From NCBI GenBank assembly GCA_964304625.1, contig OZ199839.1:6886234-6950233 (forward strand): a stretch of DNA of 64,000 bases, given 5' to 3'. Positions 2,683 to 62,753 of this stretch are shown here, one piece after another. Under the pieces are notes generated by a model that worked only from the letters and a program-made list of their open reading frames with translations, ran no database searches and had not been told where the DNA came from. The translations under genes were made by a program, and so were the position numbers. The DNA is from Kudoa neothunni. Its lineage: Eukaryota > Animalia > Cnidaria. Each line of letters begins with the position of its first letter. Position 1 is the first letter of the stretch.

Positions 2683-4072
2683 ATGTTAGTATTTTCATTA
2701 TTTACGCTTTTTATTGCAATTGTTACAACTGGTGATTCACTCAATTTGTTATATATTCGTATATAATTATTTACTTTATCAAGAGAGAGCTTTGCCTTCT
2801 TACGAGAAAGATGAAGGTCAAGCACCAGCTTGGTTGGCGAATGAAGAACTAAAAACAAAGGCTGCTGTAGAAAGATGGTATATCGACAAAGATGACGCAA
2901 CTTGTAAACCTTTTACCTATCTTGGGTCTCTTGGAAATTTCAACAACTTTGTTTCAAGAGCTGCTTGCAATGAGCATTGTACATTGCGTTTAATTGATAT
3001 AAGCGTCTAATATTGAAACAGTAAAATTTAAACCAGAAGAACAAGTTAATGCATGCGGATTAGTCAAAGAAGTGGGAAGTTGTGGGTTAACTGGCGAAAA
3101 AATGTTGACAAGATGGTATTTCAGTCTAACTGATGTTGGCGGTAAGACGAGCTCTTGTCACAGCTTCCAATACAATGGTTGTGGTGGAAACGCAAACAAC
3201 TTCGAATCAAAAAAAGAGTGTGAACAAGCCTGTCAAAGTAATTCTCTCATTGTTTAATTTACAATTTAAACTCAATTAATATGATAAATATTATTTTTCT
3301 ATTATGTTTATAGATATAGAAAATGGTCGGATGACCGGACAATTTAACCCTAAAACGATGATTGCAACTCCAAATGAATTTGATTGCAAGTTTGTGCCTG
3401 AAGTGAAAACTGAGAGCCCCAAAATGGGAATAATTCCTCACAAGGATGGAAATAGATGCGTTTATGCTGCTGTCGGAACGGCTGCCAATAGGGGATTTTT
3501 CGGCGATTTACCAGTTTGTGTCAAGACCTGCATAAGTATATAACTCACAGTAGTAAATAATTTATTTATCTCAAATAGAAAGGAAAGTTGCAGCTTGCAA
3601 TGCTGGGGGTCCATATCAAGTTGAGACACAAGAAGCCGTGAGTGATGCCAAAGAATATTTTTACTTCAATAAAACACTTGCATTATGTCTGCCCTTTTTG
3701 TCAAAGGCACCGACCGGTGGTACTCCTGTAATTGACGATGGTGCGTTGAACATATTTAGCTCTGTTGAGTTGTGTGCAAGTTACTGCCCTGCAAGTATTA
3801 ATTTAATTTAAATTACTACGTTTTATATTAATTTAGCTGCTCATATTGGTCAATTAACTGCGGTTGAAGCTTGTAAACTACCAAAAACCGGAGTTTCAAC
3901 AACAAGCGATAAATACCAACTTTCTAGATTCTACTACGATCACTCCGCAACCGAAGACAGTAAAAAATGCACAGAGTTTAAATTTAACGGAAAAGACATG
4001 AACCTGAATAACTTCAAAACTGCCGCTGATTGCCAAAAAATTTGCAAGGACCCTTTGACAGGTTCAAATTAA
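2683..4072 (+). CDS. Secreted five-Kunitz-domain protein, paralogue 1 (377 aa, 6 exons)
   Basis: Exons 2683-2731, 2784-2978, 3022-3237, 3314-3535, 3579-3794, 3837-4072. All five introns are GT-AG and phase 1, and the frame is open to TAA. Signal peptide MLVFSLFTLFIAIVTT. Exon 3 is a 6-Cys Kunitz domain (C..GSC..RWYF..CHSFQYNGCGGNANNFESKKECEQAC). The other exons are degenerate Kunitz-like domains. Confidence 0.9.
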
Positions 4073-4558
4073 TTTCCAGGACCACATATCACCGAAAACA
4101 TTTTCAAAATTTCACTTAGATATACGAATATGTTAGTATTTTATTATTGGGTGAATGTATTATCTACTTAATGCCATTGAATTTGGAACATAATAATGTT
4201 TCAAACTTAGATACATAGCAATCATACCAAAAAGGAATAAATAGTTGTATAGTAGACAACTGCGAATATTCGTCGCAATCATGTTTTTTACATTCATACG
4301 AATTTCTTACGGATTGATCTTCTCAATTGTTTTTTTAATTTAAGTAAATAATTTATACAAAATATTTTTATCATTTTTTGTCCAACAGTTCAATGTAATC
4401 TCTCGTTTATAATTATTTCAGTATAAGCTAGATTATGTTTACTTTGTTATTTTAATTTCTAATTTAAAAATAATTAGTAGATTTCAACTATGATAGAGTA
4501 GCTTTCTAGCGAAGCTATACCTTTAATTCTATCATTTGAAATTGATTTACAATATTAA

Positions 4559-6115
4559 CCTTTTCGCGTCCAGTGCGCATTTGAATGCACATAAGAAAAA
4601 CACATTCTTCTAATACACTTAACTACTATTTCATACAATACATTTGATGTATCATACGCGATATCCTATTGTCTTTACAATTTCAAATGAAGAATAATTT
4701 TCCTTGAAAATTAAAGAAAATATTAAGCTTTTCATCTATATATTGAGCATGCTCCAAATGTGATAGACCACTCATAAAATTGATCAGTGTTAATTATCAA
4801 TGTCAATTTTAAAAAGTAATTTTAATTTTTCATACCAAATAATAAAAAATATAAGAGTACTTTGGGAAAATGTTGTAAGAATAAAGATTTATTTGAATGT
4901 TATAATTCGTGCATTTAAATGTACGCCGGGATCTGGTGGCGCCCAAATGTTGAAGATATTCATTACGATATTTTGGATATATCTGCGAAAATTTGAGAAA
5001 GTCAAAAAGAACTAGTTATTCTTTCAGACAATGATATTTCAGAATCTGAGATATCTTAAGAAAATGAAAATATTGATACTTTTGAAAAATGCGATGACTA
5101 CTCTAAAAACCATAATGAGACTACCGACGATGAAAAATACGAATCAAACTTCAAATTTAATTGTAATATAGAATTCCAACATTAGATGATATTGCAGATT
5201 TTGAGAATTCAGAGTGCCATTTTGAAGGAATAAGTGGACTTTTTAATCCTATCGATTACTTCAACCAAGTTATAAATAACTTCTTCATAGATTCGAAGTT
5301 CGAAGAAACAAATCTTTATGCCAGATATTCTAATACATGTTTCAAAACTGATAATGATGAAATGGATATGTATAATGGAATCCTTATTTTAATGGGTTTA
5401 ATAAGAATGCCTAAATATCGTGGTTATATGCAAAAATGTTCGAAGTTTAAATAAATTTCTAACGTGTTCACTCGCCGTAGATTTCAAAATTTCTTCAATT
5501 CTAAAACAATGGCGAAATAGTCACCCAATAATCCAAACCTGAATTTGATAGGTCTTTGAAAATAAGACCATTTTTGGACCACTTAAGATCAAATTTGTTA
5601 AAGATTTAACCCGAAAAAAGTTATCTGTAGATGAACAGATGATACCATTTTAGGTAGGTGCTGTTCAAAGCAATTTATACCTAGAAAATCTACCCATTTG
5701 GGGTTTCGAATATTAACTTGAAGATAATTTATTAGGGAATAAATTCAGTTATGGTTAACTCTTTGCTATTATACAAGAGAAATAATAAATCAAGAAAAAT
5801 AAAAAAAACGAAATATTAGATTTACTGAATTTCACCTATTTAATACGTGAGTCTTTAATATTTCTTAAAAAGGAAATGAACATAAAGTTAAAGCGAGACA
5901 AACTATCATTATCAGCAGATAATGAATTGGAAAATTGTCTTCCTCTCTTTCTGACGATATCCGAGTCGACAATGCTGGACATTCCCCCGAAGTCACGCCC
6001 ACACGCAATGGACGAAAACTTTGCAAAAACTCACGTAAATCAAATGCATCAAATGTAAAGCCTGCTGTTCTCTGATTAAATAAGAAGTTTTTTTTACGAA
6101 TTTCATCAAGAATTA
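4559..6115 (+). mobile_element. Decayed piggyBac (PGBD3-like) transposon, internally deleted
   Basis: TTAA|CCTTTTCGCG left end. Broken-frame motifs ETNLYA, GILILMGLIRMPKYR and LSVDEQMIPF. Right boundary approximate. Confidence 0.65.
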
Positions 6116-10122: not shown

Positions 10123-12307
10123 TCTTCCGGGTAAAATGTAAAATTTGGGTGTAAGTACATCCCAGTTTTTTTCAGCCAAATTATTGGAAAATAATAGGTA
10201 ATTATTCTTGTGTAATGAGAAGAATTTTTGTCAAGTAATTTTTGAGTAATTAACGAGAAATCATTGTTAAACATTCGATGCGTTTACGAGGGTATACTTG
10301 GGTGTTCTGGCGCTCAGAAAAATTTACATGAATCAATCAATGCTCAACTTTAAACGTATAAACAAACTTGAACAATTCTTTAGAACTTTAAATACACATA
10401 GAAATAAACAAATAAAAAAACTAATATGTGTACTATTTATTACAACAGTTAAGACAAATACATTACAAATGTTTTATTCAATAAAAATTAATACAAACGT
10501 CACACTTTGAGGAAGTTTTCTTGCCATTTGTTCTCTCACATAATCAACATCTGCCTTGAAGAGTCGTTTATCATTCTAAATTTGGTCTAATGTAGGGTTG
10601 AATACTTGTACTTTTTCTCGATAGCAGATGACATGTCATTTTCTCAACCACCATCCTCAAGAAATCTCTTCTTCTAAGACTTACAAAAGAAAAGAGTTCT
10701 TTGAATATGCAAAAAGCATTTATCAAGGTGATATCGATCATATTGAAAAACACAATTAGTGGCTAACGACGATTGATTGTTCTGACATTAATCGAAGCCA
10801 ATAACCTTGCGATGGTATCAATTCCCCTCTTTATCGAATTATACTGCAATACAATGTCAGGCTGAAATAGCGCTTCAATTGCAATATGTATGTTATTTGA
10901 AGATGAACAAAGCATATAGACAGGATTATTCTTCCTCCGTAAATACCTTTATATCATCTTTTTGTTATTAAATATAAAAAGAGATGAAAATAACGGTGTG
11001 TCTCTTTGAGGTCTTAGGTAGAATGGAATATCATGTTTGTTTTCATGCATGGTTCCAACCATTGTAAGTTTTCTACTTAACAATTCATCAGCTAACTCAA
11101 TTGACGTAAAAAAGCTGTCGCAAACAATGTTCCGTCCCGAGTTAATGAATGGTTCCGTAAGTTTCAAAGCAATGGTTTTTCCAGCATTAACAGTTCTCGT
11201 GTAATTCTGAGACCGCTTACCCAAGTAGACAGACAAATTGCAAACATATGTTGATCTAGGATCAACCAATAGAAAAAATTTAATCTCATACATGGCAGGT
11301 TTCATCGACATATACTGCTTGAATTTGCAGCGATCTCTGAATGCAACAAGTTGTTCGTCGACGTAGAGACCTTCATATGGGCGAAAGCTACGATCAAATA
11401 AATCAGCCCAAAGAGCCAAATATGGCAAAATTTGTCATTAACTTTTCTCAAGTAAGTTAGTTTCTGAGTCATTAAAGTGAAGTGCCCCTAAATTTTCCGA
11501 ACTCTTGTTAATGACAAAATATCGCGATATATTTTTCTTCCTTCGCCAGATCCAAATAATTCCTTAAGGGGTCCATGGTTGTCTCTATATATGCTCATTA
11601 AAATTAAGCATCCGATGAGGTCATCAAGTTCGATTTTGTTTATTTTATCCAAGCATTTCCGAAAAAATTTTCTCTATATTTATTTGCAAACTTTAAAATC
11701 TAATTTTACATATCAGGATTAAATAACACCTAAAAGTATCAAAAGCTTTGTTAACATTTCGAGATATGTGAGGAGAAACGCCTGGAAGATTATTAATAAT
11801 AATTTCAACTGTCCATATCTCTCTATTTTTATCAATTAATGAGTCTGGTGGTACATTAGTGGTATAATCTTCATTACATGATAATATATTATCATCAAAT
11901 AAGAAATTATAATCAGAAGAATCAATATCAGAACAACTACCACTGTAATCACAAGAGCTCATTACTTCTCGAGCTTGCACATTCAGTAAACTGAATACGT
12001 TATTGTCAATTTAGGGGTTATTTAACAATTATAATTATCTAATAAGTTCCAAATATATTTCATAAAATATTTTAAACAATTTTATCAGAAAAAACCTTTG
12101 AGTGTATTTACACCCCAATTTTCCTCGGAAGCTGTTTTAGCGTTAAGTCAGAATAAAAAAATTCAAATTTTTCTTTTGCTTATTATGCATTACATAAGTT
12201 TTAAAATTTTGCGGAAACATGAACTGTGTCTATCGCGTTTGTAATAGGAAAAAATTGCATCAACACTCTCCTGAGGTGGAAATACACCCCATTTTACTCG
12301 GAGGGTT
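10123..12307 (-). mobile_element. Decayed piggyBac (PGBD4-like) transposon
   Basis: ORF 10949-11428 has VDEQLVAFR, KPAMYEIK, IVCDSFFTS and MVGTM. ORF 10571-10753 has FFNMIDITLINAF. Terminal repeats CTTCCGGGTAAAATG and CATTTTACTCGGAGGG. Confidence 0.85.
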
Positions 12308-12629: not shown

Positions 12630-12648
12630 ATATATATATATATATATA
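12630..12648. repeat. (AT)n microsatellite
   Basis: Direct reading of the sequence. Confidence 0.8.
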
Positions 12649-13013: not shown

Positions 13014-14403
13014 ATGTTGGTATTTTCACTTGTTACGCTTTTTATAGCAACTGTTACAACTGGTGATTCACTCAATTTGTTATATATTCGTATATAATTA
13101 TTTACTTTATCAAGAGAGAGCTTTGCCTTCTTACGAGAAAGATGAAGGTCAAGCACCAGCTTGGTTGGCGGATAATGACCTAAAAGCAAAGGCTGCTGTA
13201 GAAAGATGGTATATTGACAAAGCTGACGCCACATGCAAACCTTTTACCTATCTTGGATCTCTCGGAAATTTTAACAATTTTGTATCGAGGGCAGCTTGCA
13301 ACGGGCATCGTACATTGCGTTTAATTATTATAAGCGTTTAATATTTAAATAGTAAAATTCAAACCAGAAGAACAAGCTGATGCATGCGAGTTAAACAATA
13401 ATGTAGGAAGTTGTGAGTTAACTGGCGAAAAAATGCTGACAAGATGGTACTTCACCAAAAGTGATGTTGGCGGTAAGACGAACTCTTGTCACAGCTTCAA
13501 ATACAGTGGTTGTGGTGGAAACGCAAACAATTTCGAATCAAAAAAAGAGTGCGAACAAGCTTGCCAAAGTAATTCTCTCATTATTTCATGCAGAGCTTAA
13601 AATAAATCAGTATGATAAATATTATTTTTTAATTTTGTTGACAGATAAGAAAAATGGTAAAGTAACAGAACAATCCGACGCAACCAAACTGACTGCAACT
13701 CCAAATGAATTCGACTGCAAATTCGCGGCTGAAGTAAAAACTCACGAACCCAAAATGGGAATAATTCCTCACAAAGATGGAAATAGATGCGTTTATGCCG
13801 CTGTTGGAAAGATTGCGACAAGGGGATTTTTTGATGATTTACCAAACTGTGTCAAGACTTGCATTAGTATATAATTCACTGTAGTAAATGGTTTGTATAT
13901 CTCAAATAGAAAAAAAAGTTGCAGCTTGCAATGCAGACGGTCCATATCAAGTTGAATCACAACAAGATAAAGTCACATCTGGGGTCGCAGAATATTTCTA
14001 CTTCAATAAAACCCTGGCCTTATGTTTGCCATTTTTATCACTGCCGCCAACTGGTGATACCCCAAAAATTGACGATGGTGCATTGAACATATTTAGCTCT
14101 GTTGAGTTGTGTGCAAGTTACTGCCCTGCAAGTATGAACCTAATTTAATGTGACACGAATAATAATAATTTAGCCGCTCATATTGGTCAATTAACTGCTG
14201 TTGAAGCTTGTAAGCTACCACAAACCGGAGTTTCAAGTGATAGCGATAAGTACCACATTGCTAGACATTACTACGATCACTCCGCAAATCCTAAAGCATG
14301 CAAAGAGTTTACTTTTAACGGAAAAGACATGAACCTGAATAACTTCAAAAGTGATGCTGACTGTACAAAAATTTGCAAGGATCCTTTGACAGGTTCAACT
14401 TAA
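13014..14403 (+). CDS. Secreted five-Kunitz-domain protein, paralogue 2 (377 aa)
   Basis: Exons 13014-13062, 13115-13309, 13353-13568, 13645-13866, 13910-14131, 14174-14403. Same phase-1 intron positions as paralogue 1; frame intact. Confidence 0.9.
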
Positions 14404-21834: not shown

Positions 21835-24800
21835 ATGATGATGAGATTGTCTTCGATACAACGATATGCTTCCACAATATATCTGTTGATTTTCAGTCGT
21901 AATTTTCTTTGAGATTATAGATATATTAATCGTTATTAGTGTTATGTGCGAAAAATGTGCTCTCTGATAATATCGATAATAATTTAATGGAAGTGAATTT
22001 TTCATACCGTAAATTGGAATATATTATTTCACTTTCTGGATACAATATTGAGAATAGCTTCAGATACTGTGCCTTCCAATATTATGGACAAACTAGAGAA
22101 GCAATTAGCCTCGCCTCTAAGTGCACTACGGGCATAAGTGGTGCAAAATTGGATCAAAATTTAAATATGTGTACTTACAAGTGTAAAAGAATTGAGTTAA
22201 ATCTCAGTGGTGCGGAGTTTAATACAATTAAGTTTTTAAAGTGGTGTCAAGGTATGAGTGAAAATGATGTAAAAAAATGTTTGATCAAGAGAGTTTTTGT
22301 CATAAAAAGTATAGTAACATATTTGATATTGTTTTAATATAATAAAATAGATCTTTATATAAAGAGTTCACTGACAGCAACCAAAGCAAATAGCACGTTC
22401 ACTGTTTTAGTTCGAAGAAAAGAAGGCCGCGATTTGACTGTCAAAGAAAATCTCCTTTTAAAACGTATTCTAGGATCGTCGACTGCGTTTTATACATCCA
22501 AATCTATTACACTGCATTCAAAATCAGATAAACCTACGTATGTGGTTGAAGTTGAAAATCATCCACCAGAAGTTTTATTGAGCCCAAAACACCTCGGTGA
22601 AAATTGTTTTATTGCCACTGGATCAAAAGAAGACGGCATTAATAATTATTATACAATTACGCTCCAAAATCCGAAACCATCGCAAATTTGTTATTTTGGA
22701 ATAAAAGATATTAATGACACTCATTTTTCCTCTAATTGTTCAGAGATGAATAGAGCTGGGCCTTGTCTTCAGCCTTGCTACAAAGCTACCTTATATCATA
22801 AACATAATCCAACCTTGAAATTTGCTCAAGTACTTGTAAAACCCCTTGAAAGGATGATATCGAAAGAGTTTATTCAAACAATCACATGTAAATTGTAATC
22901 TATCTAATGTGTCTTATCGAATCTATAGTCGGCAATCAACCCATTGTTACTGTAACTGGAAAGAACGGGGCATCTGTTGATTTAACTGGTCTAAAATTAA
23001 ATGAAGATGGCCGTTCTGTAGGGGGAGCAGCTATCACAGAAATTAAAATAATTGAGAAAAATGTGGGACTTAAAGATAATTGGGTAAATCCCGCATGTAA
23101 CGGTAACGGAGGATGTGATAGTTTTCTATCGATAACTTTGAGTTCACTTCAGCCACTAACAGAATACATTTTAAAAATTAAAATAAAAGGACTTGAAACA
23201 TTAGATTCTCCCGAAGTTAATTATTATCACCATTATTTATATTTCAAAACTATAGGTAGCGCTAGATGTTGATTCCTTATATATAATGTTAAATAGGAGA
23301 TGAATTAACAAATAGTGGTACCTTCACGATAAGCAACACTTCTGGTCAACATAATGAACTAACTCTAAATCTATCTAATTCATTTTCCAGTGAAAAAAGT
23401 AACAAAGTAAAATGTGATCTCTATTATTCAGTCGTTGGAATTGATAATTCGATATATCCTGCTACATGCAAAAAAGATAGTGATAAAAAATTTTGTTCTG
23501 GTGCTTGTAACGAAAATTTCAATATAATAAATCTTGATCCTAAAACAAACTACAAAATAACTATCTGCCCAAATGGATATAATTGTGTTAAAAGCACTGA
23601 AATGTTGAGTAATTTACTTTTATTATTCTAACAATAATGAATTTAAATAGCTACTGGAACCGATATAACAATAGAAACCTCAGAAATTGAACAAGGAAAA
23701 ACAACAGTTACATTGACTGTTTCTTCAACTGATAATTCAGGAACTTCTTGGGCATACATTCTACTGGAACAAGAATCTAACAAAATTATCAAGGATTGTT
23801 TGAATGGTAGTTGCGAAACTGTCCTAGCGAGTGGATCTAACACCATAGAACCCTTATGGGCTTCTCTCAACTGCGAAGTTGCATATAAACTAGTTGTCAT
23901 AAATGTAGATTACTCTAAACCAAAAGAACAAAATTTAAAATGTAATTTGTCTTCTATTGAAGGATTAACTTTATATTTATAGGTGGTATTGAAGAAAGCA
24001 ATCAGAACATGCTTCTATATTATAATAAAGTGGAATCAAAGTACATGGTAAAATTCAAAGATAATGAACTAACTGGTAAGACTGATAAAGAATGCACAGT
24101 CCGAAAATCTAATAATAAACTTTTGAGTTATTCTGATATTGAAATTAACGGGAAAAATATAAATAAATGCGACGTGCTGTTAGCAGAATTCGAAATTGAT
24201 CCTAATAGTCAGAATAAACCAAATTATATTTCCGTTACTTATGAAGACAATAAAACTAAGAAAATAGATTCCCAAGAATCGGGGCTTAAAAAAAGTATTA
24301 TTGCAAAGTCGAGAAATAATGATGAAGATCTACTTTTGGGTGATAATCATGGCAAAAAGGACGAATTAAAAAATCTCTCTTCACTACTTGAAAAAGATCC
24401 AACGTCACAACAATTGACAGAAGTCAAAATTAAAATAGGAAAGGTCTATTCATACTACATAGGTATTATATAATTAAATTATAAATTTAACCATTTTTCT
24501 AAGATCATTTCAAAGAACTTACTCACATAGCTGAATTAGAAGGTGATAGAATAAAAATGAGTTTAAATAAATGTTCATTATCGTGCAAAGCATATAAGGA
24601 TACCTTGTTAGAGAAATCTGTGATGGAAACAAAATCTGGAAACTCCCCATGTAATTCTGGAAGCTATTCGATTCAATTCGATGAGCTAGTAAAAGATTAT
24701 TACATAAGCTGCCCAGGATATTTTGATTTTCATTATTTCTACGACAATACATTTGTCATGGATCAAGCCCCTGTTTTCAGTAGATTTTATTACGAACTAA

Positions 24801-27800: not shown

Positions 27801-28708
27801 CTATAAGCTTATTTTTAATTATATTTTTCAGTTAATGGTGCTATTTCAACTAAGCATTCGCTTGATGGAGATAATGACTTGACAATTGAAGTGGATTTTA
27901 CAGGAAAAAAAGACAATTCAATATGCCCATTTATAATTCAGGAAAAATCCGGAAACGATCAGGAGGGGGAAATTGTTACATGGTGTAATGATGACGAGGA
28001 ATGCTCGGCGAATAGATGTACTGTTAACATCAATAACTTGTCGACGGAAAAGGATTATATATTGAAACTGAAAGTAAAGGATCACTCACTATATAGATCA
28101 TATATTATTCAATGTAAATATTTTTTGTTTAAACTATTAAATAATCCTTATTGTTAAATAATATATTTTGCGAAGACTCGAGAATAGGTCAAATGAAAAG
28201 GTAACGAAATTCTAATTATTTGCTCCATATATTTATAATGATTCATTTAGTAAATTAAATAAAAAATCTTTGCGGAATAACAAATTTATAGAAGGAGAAA
28301 ACATAAGGAGCGAGTATGCCAACATTGTAGTAAATGATATCGTTCAGAAAATAATAGAAAAGGTTGAGAAAAGGTAAACTACCCACAATTTTTTATGTCA
28401 TATTTATAGCATTATATATAGTAAAATTATTATAATTTAATGAACTGAAAAATAATAAAAATTGTAGATAATGAAGAAAATCACAACTACAATGTTGCAA
28501 AGAATAGTTATTCGTAATTTACATGATTATTCTCATGTTTTACATTAGATAGGTCTGTCGGAAGTTATATGTAACAGAAAATACATATTTGTTGTAGATA
28601 ATCTCTTTTAGCTTATATGCAATGATACCCATCGTGGCTTCACTTTTTGTGGTGATAGGTATAGCTGTTTACAGGAAGAATTCTAAGAACATTTCTTACG
28701 ATCTATAA
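21835..28708 (+). CDS. Large type-I membrane protein with Cys-containing fibronectin type III-like repeats (about 1,970 aa, about 23 exons)
   Basis: Manual exons: 21835-21898, 21940-22308, 22351-22887, 22929-23255, 23297-23608, 23651-23941, 23983-24462, 24504-25067, 25110-25421, 25462-25743, 25791-25925, 25963-26121, 26161-26456 (or 26462), 26531-27116, 27155-27457, 27502-27789, 27832-28113, 28176-28200, 28251-28373, 28410-28420, 28468-28513, 28553-28570, 28612-28708. Hydrophobic N-terminus (STIYLLIFSLLCA). FN3 tyrosine-corner motifs: LQPLTEYIL, LDPKTNYKI, GLNSDTTYTL, GLTAGTNYVV, LELGATYTV, LSTEKDYIL. TM segment ILYAMIPIVASLFVVIGIAVY followed by RKNSKNISYDL*. The junction at about 26460 and the 3' micro-exons are less certain. 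Confidence 0.75.
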
Positions 28709-36594: not shown

Positions 36595-37214
36595 TCAAAA
36601 AAATCAACGAATGTTTTTTTAATAATTACAAGGAAAAAATATAAATATTTATGAATCTTTTGATTAAATTATATGACTTTTTTGATATATTTTAAATATT
36701 ATTAACCTCAAAATCATAGACCATAACTATTAAAGTTGAGGAATGTAATTTTCCCTTTATTCAAAAAAAAAGAATTACATCATTAAATTAAAAAAATTTA
36801 TCTATTTTTAAGACATTTAGAGAACAACATTAAAGGAATAATGAATAATTTTTCATTCAGTTTTATGAATAACATTAGTCTCATTCTCTTTATTGATGAT
36901 ATGAATAAAGTTATTATATTAAGACAATTGGATTTCTATCAATACAAATAATTTTTGTTTTAATTAATATTGGCCTAGTATTATTATTATTGTTATAGTA
37001 CTCTTTAAAATTTTTATTGAGCAATCGTGGACAATCAAAAAAAAATTCTCCGTTTCGTTTGAATCAATTATTATCATATAAACAACCATTCATAAATAAT
37101 GAATAATCGATCCGATTAATAAATTATGATTCATCGAAGTATTATACATAATTTAAGGAATAAAATTCGTATTTAATATCTATCATTAACGACTGTTTTA
37201 TATTAATTTGTTTG

Positions 37215-38598
37215 ATGTTGGTGTTTTCATCATTTTCCTTGTTCATAACAATTGTTACAGCAGGTAATTCACTCAATTCGTTGTATAAATAATTACTTAT
37301 TGTATCAAGAGAGAGCTTTGCCTTCTTACGAGAAAGATGAAGGTCAAGCACCAGCTTGGTTGACGGATGAAGCTGCAAGAGCAAAGGCTGCTGTCGAGAG
37401 ATGGTATATCGACAAAGCTGACGCCACATGCAAACCTTTTACCTATCTTGGATCTCTCGGAAATTTTAACAATTTTGTATCGAGGGCAGCTTGCAACGGG
37501 CATCGTATATTGTGTTTAATTAATATAAGCGTTTAATATTTAAATAGTAAAATTTAAACCAGAAGAACAAGCTGATGCATGCGAGTTAACCAATAATGTA
37601 GGAAGTTGTGAGTTAACTGGCGAAAAAATGCTGACAAGATGGTACTTCACCAAAAGTGATGTTGGCGGTAAGACGAACTCTTGTCACAGCTTCAAATACA
37701 GTGGTTGTGGTGGAAACGCAAACAATTTCGAATCAAAAAAAGAGTGCGAACAAGCTTGCCAAAGTAATTCTCTCATTATTTCATGCAGAGCTTAAAATAA
37801 ATCAGTATGATAAATATTATTTTTTAATTTTGTTGACAGATACAAAAAATGGAAAGATAGCAAATGAAAGCGACCCTACCAAACTGACTGCAACTCCAAA
37901 TGAATTTGATTGCAAATTCGCGGCTGAAGTAAAAACTCACGAACCCAAAATGGGAATAATTCCTCACAAAGATGGAAATAGATGCGTTTATGCCGCTGTT
38001 GGAAAGACTGCCGAAAGGGGATTTTTTGATGATTTACCAAACTGTGTCAAGACTTGCATTAGTATATAATTCACTGTAGTAAATAGTTTATTTATCGCAA
38101 ATAGAAAAGAAAGTTGCAGCTTGCAATGCAGACGGTCCATATCAAGTTGAGTCACAAGTCCAAGTCACAAATGAAGTAAAAGACTACTTCTACTTCAATA
38201 AAACTCTTGCATTATGTCTGCCCTTTTTGTCAAAAGCACCAACGGGTGATACCCCAAAAATTGACGATGGTGCACTAAACATATTTAGCTCTGTTGAGTT
38301 GTGTGCTAGTTTCTGCCCTGCAAGTATTAATTTAATTTAATATAGTGTGTATAATATTAATTTAGCTGCTCATATTGGTCAATTAACGGCGGTTGAAGCT
38401 TGTAAACTACCAAAAACCGGAGTTTCCGATAGTAATGATAAGTACCAGATTGACAGATTCTACTACGATCACTCCGCAAGCGATGGCACTAAATGTGCAT
38501 CATTTAAATTTAACGGAAAAGATATGAACCTGAATAACTTTAAAAGTTCAGATGACTGTATAAAAATTTGCAAGGATCCTTTGACAGGTTCAACTTGA
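37215..38598 (+). CDS. Secreted five-Kunitz-domain protein, paralogue 3 (377 aa)
   Basis: Exons 37215-37263, 37310-37504, 37548-37763, 37840-38061, 38105-38323, 38366-38598. Frame intact, ends TGA. Confidence 0.9.
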
Positions 38599-40612: not shown

Positions 40613-42429
40613 CAGTGCGTTACGGGTCGTTCGTAAATTCTGAAGTCGCGCGGGCGCAATTAGAGAGAATACAGTGTCATAAATCAGCTATAATAATCAA
40701 TTATTTTTTGGAAAAATATTCAGTTAAGGTGTTATTTTTAAAGTTTTTCACAATTACACTATGTATTTCTCTTCCCATATCCGGAATGTATTTATAACCA
40801 CTCAAACTATTATATTTTAAATAGTGTCTTAAATAAGATAAATGAGAGAGAGCAATTTTTGATGAAATAATTTAGCTTTCTTTGTCGTCCAATTTATTAA
40901 AATTTTCTTCTTCTTTAGAGTTACCATCATTAATCATGCCAAGTATTTCTTCAGAAAAATTTGAACTCAAAATTTCTTTTTCATCCATTTCAGTGTCTGT
41001 ATAGGAATTGGGGACATAGTTTGATTTTCTAAAATCCGCCGTATTGAAATAGTTAATAATTTTCGTTCTAGTCACGGCTTCAGAAGCAGATTTTATCAAA
41101 AAAAGAGCATCCAAAATATTGGATAGTGAACGTTCTAGCTGCGATTCAACTGAAGCTATGTATTGTCGGATGATAAATGTTTTGTAATGTCGTTTGAATA
41201 AGTAATTATACCCTGATCTATGGGCTGAAGGAGACTAATGGTATTTTGGGGTAAAAATACAAGCTTGATATGTGAATATTCTTGATTGACGTGGCTTACA
41301 GTTTGCATTATCCAAAAGCAATAATGTAATTTTATTTTTTCCCTTAAAATATTCATTTAAACCGACCGTATAACTTTAAATATTGAGCAGTTCATCCAAG
41401 CTTGTCGATTATGTTTATAAGTTAATGTTAATGTATTGTTTCCCTTGAAGCATCTTGGTCTTTCAAATTGCCCAATAACAAACTGAGGTGGTTTTTCATC
41501 TGCCATTGAAGAGCCCAGAAGTATTGTTACACATTTTTTCGACCTATTTAATCCCTTCAGATTGAATTCGTTTGATGTGGCATAGCTTTTACCTAAAATA
41601 TAGCAATAAAAATACCTTAAAAAGTTGCAGTTCCTCCGAAATTGTTGATAGAATAATGCGGTATCATCAATATTATATACATTCTCTGAATTAGTATTTT
41701 CCAGAATATTTTTCAGTTGTAGGAGCCAACTTTTAATTTCAATAATATTTACATTAACAGCTTCTCCATAAAATTTAATATTTTTTAAATTAAAATGTCG
41801 CTGGAAATCATGAAACCAGTCATACGTTGCGTTAGCATTAAGTTTTTCTTCTAAACATATTTTATTTTTCTCGTTGATGATTTCGACAGATATTTCAATA
41901 TTTTTTGAGCACACCCAAAGTATCCCTAATCATAAACTCTTTGGTCAAAATTTGGATTTTGTCCTTTTTCTAAGGTATTTTTTCGTTTTAGAAACCAAAC
42001 CAACTTCAAATGTTCTGATTATGTCTTCTTTTTGGTTTAAGATACTGTCGAGAGTAGATATTGAGGATATGCTTAATTATTTAATGGTTTTTGTTTTCGC
42101 TCCACGCCCTGGCTAGTTTTCGAAAAACTTTATTGTCATACTTCTCTTTAAAGTCCTAAATCGATTCTTATTTCTGCTTACCATTTCGCCATCAATCAAA
42201 AACAAGAATCTCGACGCACCCCAAAAGTTTCGAACCACGCGTCACTACAAATTACTCCATAAAAAACATTATTAATTTAAAAATATTTGATTTATATTCT
42301 TAATGGTAAACAAAGTTTTTTGATTAGTTTCATAAATAAATAACTTATTATCTACTAATTCGTGTTAATTTTGTAACATTTTCTCAAATTACGAACTACA
42401 TGTCACTACGAACGACACATCACCCACCG
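40613..42429 (-). mobile_element. Decayed pogo/Tigger (TIGD4/6-like) element
   Basis: TA|CAGTGCGTTACGGGTCGTTCGTA ... TACGAACGACACATCACCCACCG|TA. ORFs contain WFHDFQRHF, YNIDDTALFY, VIGQFERPRCFK, AWMN and FLPQNTISLLQPIDQGII. Confidence 0.85.
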
Positions 42430-45719: not shown

Positions 45720-46108
45720 TATATGTCTAGAAATGATGAATAATTTTCCATTACATATTATGAATAATGGTGCTCTCATTTTTATTGGTTATTTAGAAAG
45801 AGGTATTATATCAAATAAAATATTATTCACATAAATAAATATAATATTTATATTTATTAAAATTGTTCTAATAATAATAATAGTGCTACTATAATACGCC
45901 ATAAAATTCGTAATGAACAATCGTAGACAATCAAAAAAATTCTCCTTTTCGTTTGAATTAACTATTATCATATAAACAACCATTCATAAATAATGAATAA
46001 TCGATCCGATTAATAAATTATGATTCATCGAAGTATTATACATAATTTAAGGAATAAAATTCGTATTTAATATCTATCATTAACGACTGTTTTATATTAA
46101 TTTGTTTG

Positions 46109-47492
46109 ATGTTGGTGTTTTCATCATTTTCCTTGTTCATAACAATTGTTACAGCAGGTAATTCACTCAATTCGTTGTATAAATAATTACTTATTGTATC
46201 AAGAGAGAGCTTTGCCTTCTTACGAGAAAGATGAAGGTCAAGCACCAGCTTGGTTGACGGATGAAGCTGCAAGAGCAAAGGCTGCTGTCGAGAGATGGTA
46301 TATCGACAAAGCTGACGCCACATGCAAACCTTTTACCTATCTTGGATCTCTCGGAAATTTTAACAATTTTGTATCGAGGGCAGCTTGCAACGGGCATCGT
46401 ATATTGTGTTTAATTAATATAAGCGTTTAATATTTAAATAGTAAAATTTAAACCAGAAGAACAAGCTGATGCATGCGAGTTAACCAATAATGTAGGAAGT
46501 TGTGAGTTAACTGGCGAAAAAATGCTGACAAGATGGTACTTCACCAAAAGTGATGTTGGCGGTAAGACGAACTCTTGTCACAGCTTCAAATACAGTGGTT
46601 GTGGTGGAAACGCAAACAATTTCGAATCGAAAAAAGAGTGTGAACAAGCTTGCCAAAGTAATTCTCTCATTATTTCATGCAGAGCTTAAAATAAATCAGT
46701 ATGATAAATATTATTTTTTAATTTTGTTGACAGATACAAAAAATGGAAAGATAGCAAATGAAAGCGACCCTACCAAACTGACTGCAACTCCAAATGAATT
46801 TGATTGCAAATTTGTGCCTGAAGTTAAAACTGACCAACCCAAAATGGGAATAGTTCCTCACAAAGAAGGAAATAGATGCGTTTATGCCGCTGTTGGAACG
46901 GCTGCCGAAAGGGGATTTTTTGATGATTTACCAAACTGTGTCAAGACTTGCATTAGTATATAATTCACTGTAGTAAATAGTCTATTTATCTCAAATAGAA
47001 AAGAAAGTTGCAGCTTGCAATGCTAACGGCCCATATCAAGTTGATCCACAAACAGAAAAATACGCAAGTGCGGTCAACGAATATTTTTATTTCAATAAAA
47101 CTCTTGCATTATGTCTGCCCTTTTTGTCAAAGGCACCAACTGATAATAACCCAAAAATTGACGATGGTGCATTGAACATATTTAGCTCTGTTGAGTTGTG
47201 TTCAAGTTTCTGCCCTGCAAGTATTAATTAAATTTAAAATAGTGTGTATAATATTAATTTAGCTGCTCATGTTGGTCAATTAACGGCGGTTGAAGCCTGT
47301 AAACTACCAAAAACTGGAGAATCAAGTGAAAGCGATAAGTACCACCTTGCTAGATATTATTACACCCACTCCGGGACTAGTGGGACATGCGCAGCGTTTA
47401 AATTTAATGGAGAAGACATGAACCTGAATAACTTCAAAACTGAAGCTGATTGCCAAAAAATTTGCAAGGAACCTCTAGACGGTTCAAATTAA
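46109..47492 (+). CDS. Secreted five-Kunitz-domain protein, paralogue 4 (377 aa)
   Basis: Exons 46109-46157, 46204-46398, 46442-46657, 46734-46955, 46999-47220, 47263-47492. The 5' half is nearly identical to paralogue 3. Confidence 0.9.
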
Positions 47493-52833: not shown

Positions 52834-54230
52834 ATGTTAGTGCATTCGTTATTTTCTTTTTTCTTAGCAATTGTTACTGCTGGTGACTAATTTAATTCGT
52901 TATTCATATTTACCTATTTCATAAAGAGAGAGCTTTACCTTCTTATGATAGAGATCCAGGTCAGCCACCAGCTTGGTTGACGGATGAAGCTGCAAGAGCA
53001 AAGGCTGCTGTCGAGAGATGGTACATTGACAAAGCGGATGCCACTTGCAAACCTTTTACTTATCTTGGGTCCCTCGGAAATTTCAACAACTTTGTATCAA
53101 GATCTGCTTGCAACGAGCATCGTATATTGTGTTAACTTTATTTAAACGTTTAATTCTGAAATAGTAAAATTCAAACCTGAAGAACAAGCGGGTGCATGTG
53201 CGTTAGCAAAGGCAGTTGGGGAATGCGGTTTAACAGGCGATAAAATGTTAAAAAGGTGGTACTTCAACAAGAACTCTCTTGAAGGAAAAACGGCTTCTTG
53301 TCACAGCTTCGAATACAACGGATGTGGTGGAAACGCGAACAACTTTGAATCCGAGGAAGAATGCAAGAAAGCTTGCCAAAGTGATTCTCTCATTAATATA
53401 GATAATGTTTAAAATAAAATATTAAACAAACAACAAAATTTATGTATATTTATGCTAACAGATAACAAAAACGGCGGAATGGATCCACAAGCTGCTGCCA
53501 ACACTATGACAGCAACTCCAAATGAATTTGATTGCAAATTTGTGCCTGAAGTTAAAACTGACCAACCCAAAATGGGGATAGTTCCTCACAAAGATGGAAA
53601 TAGATGTGTTTATGCCGCCGTTGGATCGGCTGCCAGTAGGGGATTTTTTGACGAATTACCAACCTGTGTCAAGACTTGTATAAGTATATAACTCAAAATA
53701 ATAAATAATTTATTTATCTCAAATAGAAAAGACGGTTGCAGCCTGCAATGCTGAGGGTCCACATCAATTTGAAGTTACCGCCGATAATCCTATCACAGAA
53801 ACATCTGCTGTAACCACATACTACTATTTCAATAAAACCCAAGCATTATGCTTACCCTTCATGTCAAAAACACGAACTAATGACGACCCTGCAATTGACA
53901 ATGGTACATTGAATATATTTAGCTCTGTTGAGTTGTGTGCAAGTTTCTGTCCCGCGAGTATGGACGTAATTCCAAATGAAGTGTAATAATATTCATGTAG
54001 CTGGTCACATTGGTCAATTAACCGCCGTGGAAGCCTGTAAACTACCAAAAGTCGGAGAATCGATTAGCAGTGATAAATATAAAATCAAGAGACATTTTTA
54101 TAGCCATACTGCAAGTGGTACTAAATGCACAGGGTTTGACTTTAACGGAAAAGACATGAACCTCAATAATTTCAAAGATGAAGCAGAATGCCAAGCAATT
54201 TGTGAAACCCCATTGACAGGTTCATCTTAA
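52834..54230 (+). CDS. Secreted five-Kunitz-domain protein, paralogue 5 (380 aa, most divergent)
   Basis: Exons 52834-52882, 52927-53121, 53165-53380, 53462-53683, 53727-53957, 54001-54230. Signal peptide MLVHSLFSFFLAIVTA; frame intact. Confidence 0.9.
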
Positions 54231-55861: not shown

Positions 55862-57640
55862 CAGTAGGTGACGGGTCGTGGACATTACCGCTCCTGGACA
55901 CCTGTCATAGTTTGATGACCTACACTATACTGTTACTAATTTAATTACATTATATAAAAGCATGACAGTTATAGTAAATTATATGACCTTTAATTTTCGT
56001 TTTGATTAGTTTTAAATAAGAGTTCGCACAATTTTACAACTCATGGGCACTTGAAGAGAACCAAACAGTTTCGTTCCCTGGAAGATAAAGAGGATATAAT
56101 CCAATATTTTGAGAGAATATCAATTGAGAAAAACAGTAAAACAAAAACCCTCAATTATTTAAACTTAAAATCTCTGTCCTCATTGAATACGATTTTGAAT
56201 AATAAAGAATGTATAGTGAAGACTCATAACGAAGTAAAAACTACAAAAAGCCGAAAAACATTAAAAAAGGTCATTTCGATACGTCGGACCAACTAACAAA
56301 TAATTGAATTGAGGTCATGATGGTGAAAAATATGGAAATTTCCGCAGATGACATAATTGAAAAAGCTAATACTTTGATCCCTAATGATTCTAATGTTTCG
56401 AAGAAATTGACTTCTGGTTGGTCTCGAGGATTTAAAAATCGTTTTGGAATAAAAAGAACTAAATTCCACGGCAAAGTAAACAGCGTGGACATTAACGTAA
56501 CGGAGGATTGGAAACTTCATCTCAACGAAATATTAGAATCTTGGGAGCCTGATAACATATTCAACCTTTATGAAAGCGGATTATTTTATCAAAAAAGGGG
56601 ACGTATTGTTTTTACAGCTAAATTATTCTAATTCACTTGATAGGGGATGGCTATGTTTTACCATTCGAAGACGATATCAAAGGAACAAAAGTATCAAAAC
56701 AAGAATTACCATAGTTCTTACATGTTCAATGACAGGCGAAAAATTAACACCATTAATAATTGGGAATTATGCTAAGCCTAGATTTTTAAAAGGTATAAAG
56801 GAATATCCTACTTTATATAAAACAAATTCAAAAGCTTGGATGACTTCCCAATTATTTACTGATCACCTAATCAGTTAGAACAAAAAATTCATTAATTCAA
56901 CTAGAAAAATTATTCTACTTATCCACAATTTTCCAACACACCCCAACTTAACACTGTCAAATATTACATTATGTTTTTTCCCGTAAATTCCATCAATGTG
57001 TTGCAACCGCTGGACCAAGGTATCATTCACAGTTTCAAAGCTTAATACCGAAATTATCTGACGAATTCAATTATGGACTAAATAGAATCCAAATGTGAAA
57101 AAGTCAAATTGCCAGATATAATGGATGCGATGGTCACCGTTAAAAAATCTTGGGAATCGGTCACGACAGATACTATTAGTAACTGTTTCAATAAAGCTTT
57201 TTTTCATTCCAAAACAACTACTGAGGAAATATCAATAAACGAAATGTGTACTCTTTGTGGAGATAAAGACAATCTCGTGTGCTGAGAACCAAAAACCGAA
57301 GAAAATACATCTCCTCTTAATACTCCTATGGAAAAATCTGACGAAGAAAATGAAACTTTCAAAGTAAGAACTATTCCTACGAGTGAAGCATTGTTTTCTT
57401 CGAGTAAAATGTACACGTTTTTAAAAACACAATCCTCAAATGTTATGTACTGTCGTCGATCTATCAACTGAGATTTACGATGTAAGAAAATCAGAGTTAC
57501 GCCAGTCGAAAATCACTGACATTTTCCAACAAAAATCAAGTTAATAAATATGTTGAAAGTTTTAGTTGTATTTTATGTAGTACATCATTTAATTTTATGA
57601 GTTTTATGCATATCATTATATATTTAATTGTCACTGGTTA
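55862..57640 (+). mobile_element. Decayed pogo/Tigger (TIGD4/6-like) element
   Basis: TA|CAGTAGGTGACGGGTCG left end. Motifs GWSRGFKNRFGI, IFNLYESGLFY, KLTPLIIGNYAKPRF, KAWMTS and LQPLDQGII. Right boundary approximate. Confidence 0.8.
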
Positions 57641-61118: not shown

Positions 61119-61362
61119 AGAAGTAGATAATAATAATGATAATAACGTTATCGCGATGAATATTTGTAGTTGCATACTATACAACTACTTACTCCTTTCT
61201 GGTAGTGTTGCTATGTATTTATGTTTAAAACACTATTATATGACAAATTTAATGGTTTATAATAGATAACACACTCATATAATAATTTAATACTAAATTA
61301 TTTTAATATCTAAATAATTTAAATTCTAAAAATGTTATTTTTCCGATATTTGGGTCTGGAAA

Positions 61363-62753
61363 TTAGGCTGTGGGTGTCAATGGTGTTTCGCAAATAGCTT
61401 TGCAATCATCTTGATCTTTGAAGTTATTCAAATTCATATCTTTTCCATTAAAATGAAACGATATGCATTTTTCAGCAGAAGTAATGGTATGATCATATCG
61501 GTATCTAGAAAGCCGGTACTTATCGCTTGTTGTTGAAACCCCCGCTATTGGCAATTTACAAGCTTCAACCGCAGTTAACTGACCAACATGAGCAGCTAAA
61601 TTAATAGTATACATATTATTTTAAACTCAATTCATACTTGCAGGACAGTAACTTGCACACAACTCAACAGAGCTAAATATGTTCAATGCGCCATCGTCGA
61701 TTACAGGAGTACCACTAGTTGGTTCCTTTGACAAAAAGGGAAGACACAATGCCAGGGTTTTATTGAAGTAAAAATATTCTTTGACAGCACCTGAGAAGTT
61801 TTCTTGTTGTGGATCAATTTGATATGGGCCGTCAGCATTGCAGGCTGCAGCTGTTTTTTCTATTTGAGATCAATAAACTATTTGCCACTGTGAGTTATAT
61901 ACTTATACATGTCTTGGCACATGTTGGTAAATCGTCAAAAAATCCTCTACTAGCCTCTGTTCCAACAGCAGCATAAACGCATCGATTTCCATCCTTGTGA
62001 GGAACTATTCCCATTTTTGGATTGTGAGTTTTTACCTCAGGCACAAATTTGCAGTCGAATTCATTTGGAGTCGCTGTCAGTTTTTTAGGATCGGTTTCAT
62101 CTGTTATCTCTCCATTTTTGGTATCTATCAACGTAATTACAAAATAATTTTTATCATTCTGATTGATCTTGAACCTCACATTAAATAATGAGAGAATTAC
62201 TTTGACAAGCTTGTTCACACTCCTTTTTTGATTCAAAGTTGTTTGCGTTACCACCACAACCATTATATTTGAAGCTGTGGCAAGAGTTTTTCTTGCCGTT
62301 AACTTCAGTTTTGGTGAAGTACCATCTTGTCAGCATTTTGTTGTCAGTTAAGCCACAACCTCCTACATTATGTGTCAACCCACATGCATCAGCTTGTTCT
62401 TCTGGTTTAAATTTGACTATTTCAATATTAAACACTTAAATAAATTAAATGCAATGTACGATGTTCGTTGCAAGCAGCTCTTGAAACAAAGTTATTAAAA
62501 TTTCCAAGAGATCCAAGATAGGTAAAAGGTTTGCATGTGGCGTCAGCTTTGTCGATATACCATCTCTCGACAGCAGCCTTTGCTATTAAGCCAGCATCAC
62601 TCAACCAAGCTGGTGCTTGACCAACATCTTTCTCATAAGAAGGCAAAGCTCTCTCTTGATAAGATGAATAATTATATGTATACATAATTAATTGAGTGAG
62701 TTACCAGCTGTAACAATTACTAGGAAAAGTGAAAATAATGAAAATATCAACAT
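61363..62753 (-). CDS. Secreted five-Kunitz-domain protein, paralogue 6 (378 aa, inverted)
   Basis: Minus-strand exons 62753-62705, 62654-62460, 62416-62201, 62124-61903, 61859-61638, 61595-61363. Signal peptide MLIFSLFSLFLVIVTA; frame intact. Confidence 0.9.

Follow-up and report, generated by a model that had tools for sequence, protein, structure and literature searches.

Kunitz proteins of myxozoans have already been published as 'toxin-like proteins', with 'three KU domains in most myxozoans' (PMC9144971). They are secreted and multi-domain, evolve under purifying selection and have undergone lineage-specific duplications, with published counts of a handful per species, 39 over all surveyed and two in Ceratonova shasta (PMC9144971, PMC8083181, PMC8684318), and Kunitz transcripts are expressed during infection by the latter parasite (PMC8684318). 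The locus described here lies in a 64-kb stretch of DNA (the window) from Kudoa neothunni, a myxozoan parasite of tuna muscle with ~5,300 predicted genes (PMC12239612), and carries an array of predicted genes for secreted proteins with five Kunitz-like modules (D1 to D5). Five modules, a 2/6/4/4/4 cysteine pattern and a family of ~100-200 genes are absent from the myxozoan Kunitz literature, the comparison being by description only; no description of the five-module design or of the scale of its expansion was found in the searchable published literature, and the family goes unmentioned in the K. neothunni genome paper (PMC12239612). Three KU domains is also the number that Pfam sees in the window genes (D1, D2 and D5). 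Because just three of the five modules are detected in this way, the family in the window and the published three-KU proteins may be one and the same.

Among other parasites, the TFPI-like salivary anticoagulants penthalaris and ixolaris of ticks, the former of a type that inhibits the tissue factor/FVIIa/FXa pathway, are likewise secreted and built of tandem Kunitz modules (five in penthalaris, matching the count here), and they share with the window genes some non-canonical modules and non-basic P1 residues, binding in the tick proteins being non-canonical (PMC5438962). However, they belong to another phylum, without detectable sequence kinship to the window genes beyond the domain itself, and ticks feed on blood, whereas Kudoa is a muscle parasite. 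The cysteine pattern of penthalaris is presumably other than 2/6/4/4/4. Conkunitzin-S1 (PDB 1Y62, 2CA7) has a Kunitz fold without the Cys14-Cys38 disulfide, as in D3-D5, and is among the fold matches reported below, but it is a K+ channel-blocking venom peptide of a single domain, as opposed to a five-module chain with lengthened loops. The comparisons with ticks and cone snails that were drawn in the initial annotation hold as analogies and not as kinship. In Fasciola, proteases of the host or of the parasite itself are modulated by families of secreted Kunitz proteins, and the FhKT proteins of Fasciola hepatica resemble the present set in being secreted by an endoparasite, in being encoded by a multigene family and in having atypical P1 residues and non-trypsin targets; they differ in comprising seven single-domain, three-disulfide genes, whose Leu15 and Arg19 are not conserved in the window family (PMC7692546). 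Among solved structures, the D2 profile has its best match (E 3e-24) in the three-domain SmCI of the annelid Sabellastarte magnifica (PDB 4BD9), which also consists of tandem Kunitz modules and itself has dual specificity, but whose three modules are all canonical and six-cysteine, without reduced-disulfide modules or family expansion.

Six gene copies of ~1.4 kb were located in the window by a six-frame scan, self-BLAST and tblastn (Table 1). Five lie on the plus strand and one on the minus strand; the array reported initially stands as to its six copies, with the strand of the sixth corrected. Exon models were derived from the six units aligned with MAFFT, with junctions predicted from DNA alone. 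Each paralogue consists of a signal-peptide exon followed by five Kunitz-like exons (378-381 codons; CDS of 1134-1143 nt), all 30 introns are GT-AG, in phase 1 and 42-81 nt long, and the sole stop in every copy is the terminal one, as expected from the earlier claim of six intact paralogues with open frames and a fixed cysteine pattern. The predicted product is a soluble secreted protein of ~360 residues, with a 16-residue signal peptide and then five tandem Kunitz-fold modules. Annotation based on open reading frames would, as was also claimed, overlook these genes, since every domain has an exon of its own, ~70 codons long.

Table 1. Features of the Kunitz gene array, in positions of the window
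Feature	Position	Strand	Remarks
Gene c1	exons 2683-2731, 2784-2978, 3022-3237, 3314-3535, 3579-3794, 3837-4072	+	span 2683..4072; 378 codons
Gene c2	exons 13014-13062, 13115-13309, 13353-13568, 13645-13866, 13910-14131, 14174-14403	+	378 codons; intact, splice phases and Cys pattern as c1
Gene c3	exons 37215-37263, 37310-37504, 37548-37763, 37840-38061, 38105-38323, 38366-38598	+	378 codons
Gene c4	exons 46109-46157, 46204-46398, 46442-46657, 46734-46955, 46999-47220, 47263-47492	+	378 codons
Gene c5	exons 52834-52882, 52927-53121, 53165-53380, 53462-53683, 53727-53957, 54001-54230	+	381 codons; most divergent copy
Gene c6	exons 62753-62705, 62654-62460, 62416-62201, 62124-61903, 61859-61638, 61595-61363	-	379 codons; orientation opposite to c1-c5
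Gene-conversion tract, c3 arm	37087..37890	+	~0.8 kb, from 130 nt 5' of the ATG into D3; 100-nt windows 98-100% identical to c4
Gene-conversion tract, c4 arm	45981..46784 (approximate)	+	partner of 37087-37890; placed by the constant 8894-nt c3-c4 exon offset
Conserved 5' flank of c1	2523..2682	+	equivalent blocks upstream of 6/6 ATGs

To judge from the sequence, these six genes are very probably real, intact and selected, and encode secreted five-Kunitz proteins. The window copies are 71-88% identical among themselves (71-73% amino-acid identity between c5 and the remaining copies), with dN/dS of 0.16-0.43 and dS of 0.2-1.2. Indels in exons are of 3, 6, 9 or 12 nt, all multiples of three, and those in introns and flanks are of 1, 2, 5 and 8 nt, among others. 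It is highly likely that the genes are functional and have been selectively maintained. Local pN/pS exceeds 1 nowhere but in the loop preceding strand 1 of D4, the turn of the D5 hairpin and short stretches of D1, of the N-terminal segment of D3 and of the tail of D5, and the variable loops are near neutrality (local pN/pS about 1-1.5), for which relaxed constraint would fit equally well as diversifying selection; D1 and D3 are strongly conserved, loops included. On either side of the conversion tract shared by c3 and c4, identity between these two copies is 68-95%. Their dS is 0 in D1 and ~0.05 in D2, against 0.35-0.77 in D4-D5.

Cysteine counts per exon are 0/2/6/4/4/4 in all six copies (20 in total), with fixed spacings, and both the constant 2/6/4/4/4 pattern and the absence of the Cys II-IV pair from D3-D5 had been correctly noted beforehand. 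D2 (spacing 8/24/7/12/3) is the only module with all six cysteines, three canonical disulfides and a YxGCGGNANNF core, so that the full Kunitz set of 5-55, 14-38 and 30-51 disulfides (BPTI numbering) is found in D2 alone among the five. D3-D5 keep the equivalents of Cys1, 3, 5 and 6, without the Cys2-Cys4 pair (Cys14-Cys38 in BPTI), and D1 retains just the equivalents of Cys3 and Cys5 (the 30-51 pair), i.e. a single disulfide. The modules other than D2 are disulfide-reduced variants of the Kunitz fold. The count of two in D1 hinges on the donor site, as reading through it in c1 would turn a TGT into a third cysteine; the same codon is CGT in c2-c6, a GTAYAT donor common to the copies excludes it, and the same donor position is used in a foreign copy that is 38-40% identical.

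Against PF00014 (gathering score 21 bits), three modules of c1 are above the cut-off, namely D1 (7.8e-12, 45.6 bits), D2 (5.6e-16, 58.9 bits) and D5 (8.2e-11, 42.4 bits); D4 is under it (0.008, 16.8 bits) and D3 has no Pfam match. The D2 profile matches SmCI, boophilin, TFPI and bikunin at E 3e-24 to 1e-14. When aligned to the D2 profile with hhalign, D4 reaches E 0.013 in the correct register, and D3 aligns over 11 columns at a probability of 0.5%, which is not significant; the language-model neighbours of D3 are all Kunitz clusters, at a score of only 0.79. AlphaFold gives a pLDDT of 86.9 for D4 and of 75.5 for the best D3 model (~40 for the other four), and the predicted structures of both modules have an N-terminal 3-10 turn, a two-stranded beta-hairpin and a C-terminal helix. 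The top 50 Foldseek matches in the PDB for D3 and for D4 are all Kunitz (target TM 0.58-0.81, apart from multi-domain targets), and in a wide, unbiased VIA-align scan of 48,161 chains D3 has 23 matches at Z>=2, the highest at 6.5, every one of them Kunitz. In these models D3 and D4 adopt Kunitz folds, though missed by Pfam. The relaxed, disulfide-reduced Kunitz scaffold that had been proposed is thus upheld by D1, D2 and D5 through PF00014 and by D3 and D4 through modelling, and the fold check suggested along with it, on D1, D3 and D4, gave Kunitz in each case.

The same domain order was found in five foreign AT-rich public contigs, at 33-81% identity per exon, and every domain that is whole in these contigs has the same cysteine count as in the window genes; the five-module design therefore predates this array, and the term 'lineage-specific' applies at clade level only. 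An exhaustive search with the D3 profile returned zero annotated proteins. In the K. neothunni genome (40.26 Mb, 30% GC; three chromosomes measuring 17.15, 12.04 and 11.05 Mb and one contig of 18 kb), D3-type exons occur on all three chromosomes, at least 150 having been scored among 223 candidates (~88 at E<=1e-14), and PF00014 matches number at least 150, all above cut-off, among 950 candidates. The family has about a hundred or more copies (~100-200 genes), which have spread through tandem duplication, with gene conversion patching them, in keeping with the expanded and secreted family first proposed, a signal-peptide exon being present in all six window models. The D1-D5 order is kept in all 20 other family loci sampled across the genome; the 2/6/4/4/4 pattern was scored in 16, three appear to be damaged in a single domain and the remaining one has diverged too far for scoring.

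Such damaged loci, together with the piggyBac and pogo/Tigger fragments interspersed with the array, would be expected of decaying or never-expressed duplicates, clutter carried along in transposon-rich DNA. This reading is hardly credible, given that the six window genes are all intact over 1.1 kb despite their dS, that dN/dS is well below 1, that splice sites are conserved and exon indels in-frame only, and that the architecture is conserved in other organisms at 33-49% identity. The surroundings had been described as dead transposons; transposon fragments are indeed present, but 'dead' does not hold for all, as some may be intron-split instead.

All six window genes have G or E as the P1 residue of D2 (that after Cys2), and among 23 members of the family it is one of G/E/S/T/H/K; it is rarely basic, and the next residue is usually Leu. 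Compared with solved inhibitors, D2 has ~4 extra residues just after P1 and ~5 more in the hairpin, and a canonical lock-and-key inhibitory loop is for this reason not assured. D2 was rejected as a canonical trypsin-type Kunitz inhibitor, being without a regular Lys/Arg P1 and having a binding loop interrupted by ~4 residues.

Our preferred reading, tentative and given slightly less than an even chance, is that the family consists of secreted binders or inhibitors of proteases directed at the host. After export, the proteins would act at the surface of the parasite or at its interface with the host, as multivalent binders or inhibitors of extracellular proteases, with (i) D2 as a substrate-like inhibitor whose P1 differs between paralogues, (ii) the loops of D4 and D5, which are untied, lengthened and variable, as extra, paralogue-specific contact surfaces and (iii) the conserved D1 and D3 as a scaffold or as binders of a constant partner. 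An exon-by-exon six-frame search of the parasite genome for trypsin-fold proteases, which can miss genes split into very short exons, gave zero PF00089 matches while detecting the positive controls; ~8 papain-like (Peptidase_C1) genes are present. Any serine-protease targets would then be host enzymes (of the fish or of the alternate annelid host), given that this search gave no trypsin-fold gene of the parasite itself. The Cys14-Cys38 disulfide ties together the two protease-binding loops of a Kunitz domain, and the binding of host proteases is counted against by the lack of this staple in four of the five modules, by the rarity of a basic P1 and by the habit of K. neothunni, which grows within muscle fibres, with little contact with extracellular host serine proteases.

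The parasite's own papain-like cathepsins would be an alternative target, and Kudoa cathepsins are held responsible for post-mortem muscle liquefaction. That the family regulates these enzymes, like the FhKT1 inhibitors of cathepsin L in Fasciola, would agree with the non-basic P1 of D2, with a genome in which Peptidase_C1 and no S1 protease genes were detected and with the Fasciola precedent of Kunitz proteins inhibiting cysteine proteases (PMC7692546), but is improbable: the P1 Leu15 and Arg19 that determine FhKT1 activity are not the pattern of D2, where a variable P1 (G/E/S/T/H/K) is usually followed by Leu and then by four inserted residues, and ~100 inhibitors are hard to justify for ~8 enzymes.

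Loss of the loop-shaping disulfide from four of five modules, conservation of D1 and D3 including their loops (as for constant packing or partner contacts) and a very high copy number in a genome of only ~5,300 predicted genes would also suit non-inhibitory structural or adhesive proteins (e.g. of the spore valve, capsule or surface-coat matrix), with the Kunitz domain as a compact disulfide-stabilised block and the copies serving mass spore production. We regard this as doubtful, though with an appreciable chance, since the copies at 71-88% identity are not homogenised as dosage arrays usually are, the canonical inhibitor core is complete in D2 although P1 there is variable, and the proteins are free of repeats, low-complexity stretches and cross-linking motifs; moreover, the polar-capsule venom-like candidates of C. 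shasta include no Kunitz protein, both of its Kunitz sequences coming from the infection transcriptome only (PMC8684318).

Myxozoan literature classes Kunitz proteins as neurotoxins (PMC9144971), and conkunitzins, among them conkunitzin-S1 with its two-disulfide fold, are found among the fold matches. Toxin-like ion-channel modulators of the conkunitzin or dendrotoxin type, drawn from the cnidarian venom repertoire, are nevertheless very improbable, as known channel-blocking Kunitz toxins are single-domain peptides, fold matches cannot tell toxins from inhibitors, and an intramuscular, non-predatory parasite has no obvious need for ~100 neurotoxins. The window modules were rejected as conkunitzin-type toxins, being embedded in a five-domain protein.

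An unlikely but far-reaching reading is that the 100 or more paralogues form a diversified repertoire of secreted binders, in which D1 and D3 would be a constant framework and the D4, D5 and D2 P1 loops would behave like complementarity-determining loops, reshuffled by gene conversion. A genome-poor parasite would in that case gain a broad panel of binders or decoys of host molecules, for use in immune evasion or host manipulation, beyond plain protease inhibition.

Myxozoan gene sets are among the smallest in animals, and with ~5,300 predicted proteins in K. neothunni a family of ~100-200 genes would therefore be several per cent of the coding repertoire, and probably the largest host-interface family of a parasite responsible for spoilage of commercial tuna. 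Toxin surveys of myxozoans found few 'three'-domain Kunitz genes, and Pfam fails to see two of the five modules; annotation and counts of the family have probably fallen short so far. It may provide (i) candidate antigens or diagnostic markers, (ii) a natural series of Kunitz folds tolerating stepwise disulfide loss and (iii) a test case for effector diversification in gene-poor parasites via tandem duplication and gene conversion.

Of the RNA reads from host samples, very few mapped to the K. neothunni genome (PMC12239612). Upstream of the genes, the blocks CATTCATA, GATTAATAA, GTATTTAATATC and TTAACGA hold their position even in c5 (dS ~0.9), and the conserved 5' flank is a candidate shared promoter. 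At the chromosome ends, a (TAAACC)n telomere was seen at a single end only, as in the genome paper (PMC12239612).

A six-frame scan of the window finds a six-Cys Kunitz exon six times, and self-BLAST resolves six units of about 1.8 kb each, of which five share the plus strand and the sixth is on the minus strand. When the exon peptides of the first gene are used as tblastn queries, a signal-peptide exon followed by five domain exons (encoding modules D1 to D5) appears in identical order in 6/6 units (genes c1 to c6). Splice sites were read off an alignment of the six units, so that the junctions are comparative, and each gene is accordingly modelled with six exons and five GT-AG introns of 42-81 nt, without exception in phase 1 (the median intron reported for Kudoa neothunni is 49 bp; PMC12239612). 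The coding sequences measure 1134-1143 nt and end in a single terminal stop, while 6/6 genes have 0/2/6/4/4/4 Cys in their successive exons, with fixed spacings. The six paralogues proposed in the initial annotation, as well as their invariant 2/6/4/4/4 pattern over D1 to D5, are thus recovered in full. The N-terminus is a hydrophobic, cleavable-looking stretch of 16 residues on its own exon, and no second hydrophobic segment exists in the protein. Searches and fold predictions were run exon by exon, and the joined proteins were used for frame, Cys counts, identity and dN/dS; very few RNA reads from host samples map to K. neothunni (PMC12239612).

The five modules differ in how readily they are recognized as Kunitz domains (Pfam PF00014). 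D1 (E-value 7.8e-12), D2 (5.6e-16) and D5 (8.2e-11) are matched, D4 falls below the cut-off (0.008) and the D3 exon gives no match to this profile. The D2 profile also matches solved Kunitz inhibitors (SmCI, 3e-24; boophilin, 3e-20; also TFPI and bikunin), relative to which D2 has about four extra residues directly after P1 (the residue following Cys2) and about five in the hairpin. Since profile-profile comparison does not link D3 to D2, and links D4 weakly, alignments of both were built from c1-c6 together with 20 further loci of the family (for D3, six public protein fragments as well) and structures were predicted. In the D3 and D4 models, a short helix at the N-terminus is followed by a beta-hairpin and by a helix at the C-terminus; pLDDT is 86.9 for D4 and, for D3, 75.5 in the best model and about 40 in the other four, so that the D3 conclusion rests on one confident model out of five. 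For both models the best 50 Foldseek matches in the PDB are Kunitz domains, with target TM-scores of 0.58-0.81 (single-domain chains) and E-values that are weak (0.007-0.16), as is to be expected of folds with 55 residues. A Foldseek-independent scan of the D3 model against 48,161 representative chains returns 23 chains with Z>=2, all of them Kunitz (best Z 6.5).

Cysteine spacings agree with this assignment. D1 retains Cys3 and Cys5 as a pair with canonical spacing (20), and D3-D5 retain the equivalents of Cys1, 3, 5 and 6 and are devoid of Cys2 and Cys4 (the BPTI 14-38 pair), which is the loss of the Cys II-IV pair that had been noticed initially. Together, the Pfam matches, the D3 and D4 models and the Cys spacings indicate that all five exons encode predicted Kunitz-fold modules, of which D2 alone is canonical; for the modules whose fold had been singled out for checking, the assignment comes from Pfam (D1) and from predicted models matching Kunitz chains (D3 and D4). 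That D1 has two Cys hinges on the start position of the second intron. Read-through would create a third Cys (TGT) in c1, at a codon that is CGT in c2-c6, but the GTAYAT donor at this site is common to all six copies, and the same donor position is used in a contig from another organism that is 38-40% identical in D1. As this shared donor is conserved, a third Cys is excluded and the original reading of D1 stands.

The six genes form one array of a much larger, genome-wide family and are not a unique locus. The assembly used here totals 40.26 Mb and consists of three large contigs (17.15, 12.04 and 11.05 Mb) and a fourth of 18 kb, with about 30% GC in the window; the published description, based on data from yellowfin tuna, gives 40.2 Mb, a scaffold N50 of 12.0 Mb, 30.41% GC, 5,316 predicted proteins, three chromosomes and, besides these, a circular mitochondrial genome (PMC12239612). 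Other origins were considered and dismissed: a rhabditid nematode, as neither SL1 nor the cuticle-collagen N domain was found, an arthropod, as the R&R cuticle domain was not found, and an orthonectid or dicyemid, whose intron sizes disagree and for which the literature consulted offers no connection to Kunitz proteins. HSP70, with best matches of 78% to mixed phyla, shows only that the source is a long-branch animal. A search with the c1 D3 exon gave at least 150 scored matches among 223 candidates, on all three chromosomes and mostly in clusters, including about 88 among the matches listed at E<=1e-14 and at least 49% identity. PF00014 itself has at least 150 matches across the genome, all above the cut-off, among 950 candidates. 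The order and spacing of D1-D5 are kept in 20/20 family loci sampled over the identity range: 16 have the 2/6/4/4/4 pattern, another three each have one domain that seems damaged, and the last has diverged too far to be scored. At least one additional copy lies 4 kb upstream of the window.

Relatives outside this genome are few. An exhaustive search of 1.84 billion representative proteins with a D3-profile HMM retrieved nine proteins, six of them true relatives, all fragments from ENA or Logan assemblies; the remaining three were rejected, one being a TPR protein of bacterial origin and the others low-complexity repeat proteins, and a scan of JGI metagenomes gave no matches. Five contigs carrying such relatives, from three public datasets and with 23-37% GC, were compared with the Kudoa genes. 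In all five the modules follow the same order, with per-exon identities of 33-49% in four contigs and 57-81% in the fifth; one contig has all five modules with Cys counts of 2/6/4/4/4, and the other four have the same Cys count in every whole module. Judging from these sequences, the shared order and Cys counts imply a five-module design that predates the array in the window.

The proteins of c1-c6 are mutually 71-88% identical, and the genes are under purifying selection, with dN/dS of 0.16-0.43 at dS of 0.2-1.2 (pairwise Nei-Gojobori, five domain exons of the six genes). Indels in exons measure 3, 6, 9 or 12 nt, and those in introns and flanks include 1, 2, 5 and 8 nt. Whole-domain pN/pS is 0.21-0.44, and sliding values exceed 1 in a few stretches only (in D4 the loop before strand 1, in D5 the hairpin turn and the tail, in D1 a short stretch and in the D3 exon its N-terminal segment). 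As they never do so strongly, diversifying selection is not claimed; the pattern is compatible with a conserved frame whose contact loops evolve under relaxed constraint or diversify, positive selection being unproven. Genes c3 and c4 share a clean gene-conversion tract, which begins 130 nt upstream of the ATG (candidate promoter), covers the signal peptide and the first two modules and ends within D3, after which identity drops to 72-95%. Conserved upstream blocks are found within about 160 nt of each ATG, at fixed distances from the start codon in 6/6 genes, including the most divergent copy, and are candidates for a promoter shared by the family.

Coordinates of features in the window and elsewhere in the assembly
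Feature	Sequence	Position	Strand	Remarks
Start codon, first gene (c1)	window	2683	+	
Start codon, last gene (c6)	window	62753	-	
Conserved upstream blocks CATTCATA, GATTAATAA, GTATTTAATATC, TTAACGA	window	2523-2682 (c1)		equivalent stretches before the other five ATGs
Tract of c3/c4, about 0.8 kb, 98-100% identical	window	37087-37890 (c3), ~45981-46784 (c4)	+	flanks 68-95% identical
Run of long open exons	window	21835-28708	+	inside the Kunitz array; ORFs at 21939-27468
Transposase fragments, piggyBac (DDE_Tnp_1_7) and pogo/Tigger (DDE_1, HTH_Tnp_Tc5)	window	10949-11428, 33309-33629, 41357-41914, 56317-56878	-, +, -, +	between Kunitz genes
Dense run of Kunitz domains	contig C1	14950483-14956649	-	about 226 nt apart
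(TAAACC)n repeat	contig C2	12039536-12040069		right end of contig

As for function, the family proteins would be secreted as protease binders or inhibitors. D2 retains the invariant Kunitz core YxGCGGNANNF, and its P1, which is G or E in c1-c6, can be G, E, S, T, H or K across the family. D4 has two segments that vary and change in length, namely the loops preceding strand 1 and following strand 2, and these two loops form the protease-binding edge in BPTI-type inhibitors. A six-frame search of the genome for the trypsin fold (PF00089) gave no match (11 of 14 control genomes were positive; very short exons could escape), so that serine-protease targets, if any, would be host enzymes. Binding or inhibition of host proteases is a plausible, if tentative, reading. 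A role in regulating the parasite's own cathepsins, for which Fasciola FhKT1 is the analogue (PMC7692546), seems improbable: the 14 exon matches to Peptidase_C1 do represent about eight genes for papain-like cysteine proteases, several of them in tandem on contig C1 (near 11.95, 13.69 and 13.96 Mb), which could serve as such targets, but the Kudoa family does not conserve the residues on which the specificity of FhKT1 depends. A structural or adhesive role is rather unlikely, and channel toxins or non-function have a small chance beside host-directed binding.

Parasites are already known to have secreted multi-Kunitz families, and Kunitz proteins of myxozoans have been published. Kunitz is one of the few 'toxin-like protein' families retained in myxozoan surveys (PMC9144971), lineage-specific duplications have been described (PMC8083181) and Ceratonova shasta has two Kunitz transcripts expressed at different infection stages (PMC8684318). 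The K. neothunni genome paper mentions neither Kunitz domains, inhibitors, gene families nor paralogues (PMC12239612), and in the literature found, five modules, a fixed disulfide pattern and an expansion this large are undescribed. What appears to be new is (i) an architecture of five modules, two of which escape Pfam, (ii) the strictly conserved 2/6/4/4/4 disulfide pattern and (iii) the scale of expansion in a genome of about 5,300 predicted genes. Since Pfam detects three of the five modules, published three-domain myxozoan proteins, set side by side here by domain count alone, may be the same family with two cryptic modules.

Some further features deserve mention. Five ORFs scanned in the run of long open exons gave no Pfam match above the cut-off (Pox_G9-A16, E-value 0.0095, lies below it). 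The transposase fragments between the Kunitz genes may be split by introns, and their broken ORFs are not sufficient proof that the elements are dead. The 18-kb contig (C4; 18,219 nt) has 44% GC versus 30% for the nuclear genome; translated quickly under four mitochondrial codes, it yields 14 tRNA-like matches only and nothing recognisable as a standard set of genes, and it is probably a highly divergent Kudoa mitochondrial genome. A (TAAACC)n telomere has been reported at a single chromosome end (PMC12239612), and this repeat is seen at one contig end in the whole assembly, on contig C2. Finally, the dense run on contig C1, where PF00014 matches are stronger than anywhere else in the genome, contains at least 24 Kunitz domains of canonical type; it differs from the five-module family and appears to be a poly-Kunitz gene or array in its own right.
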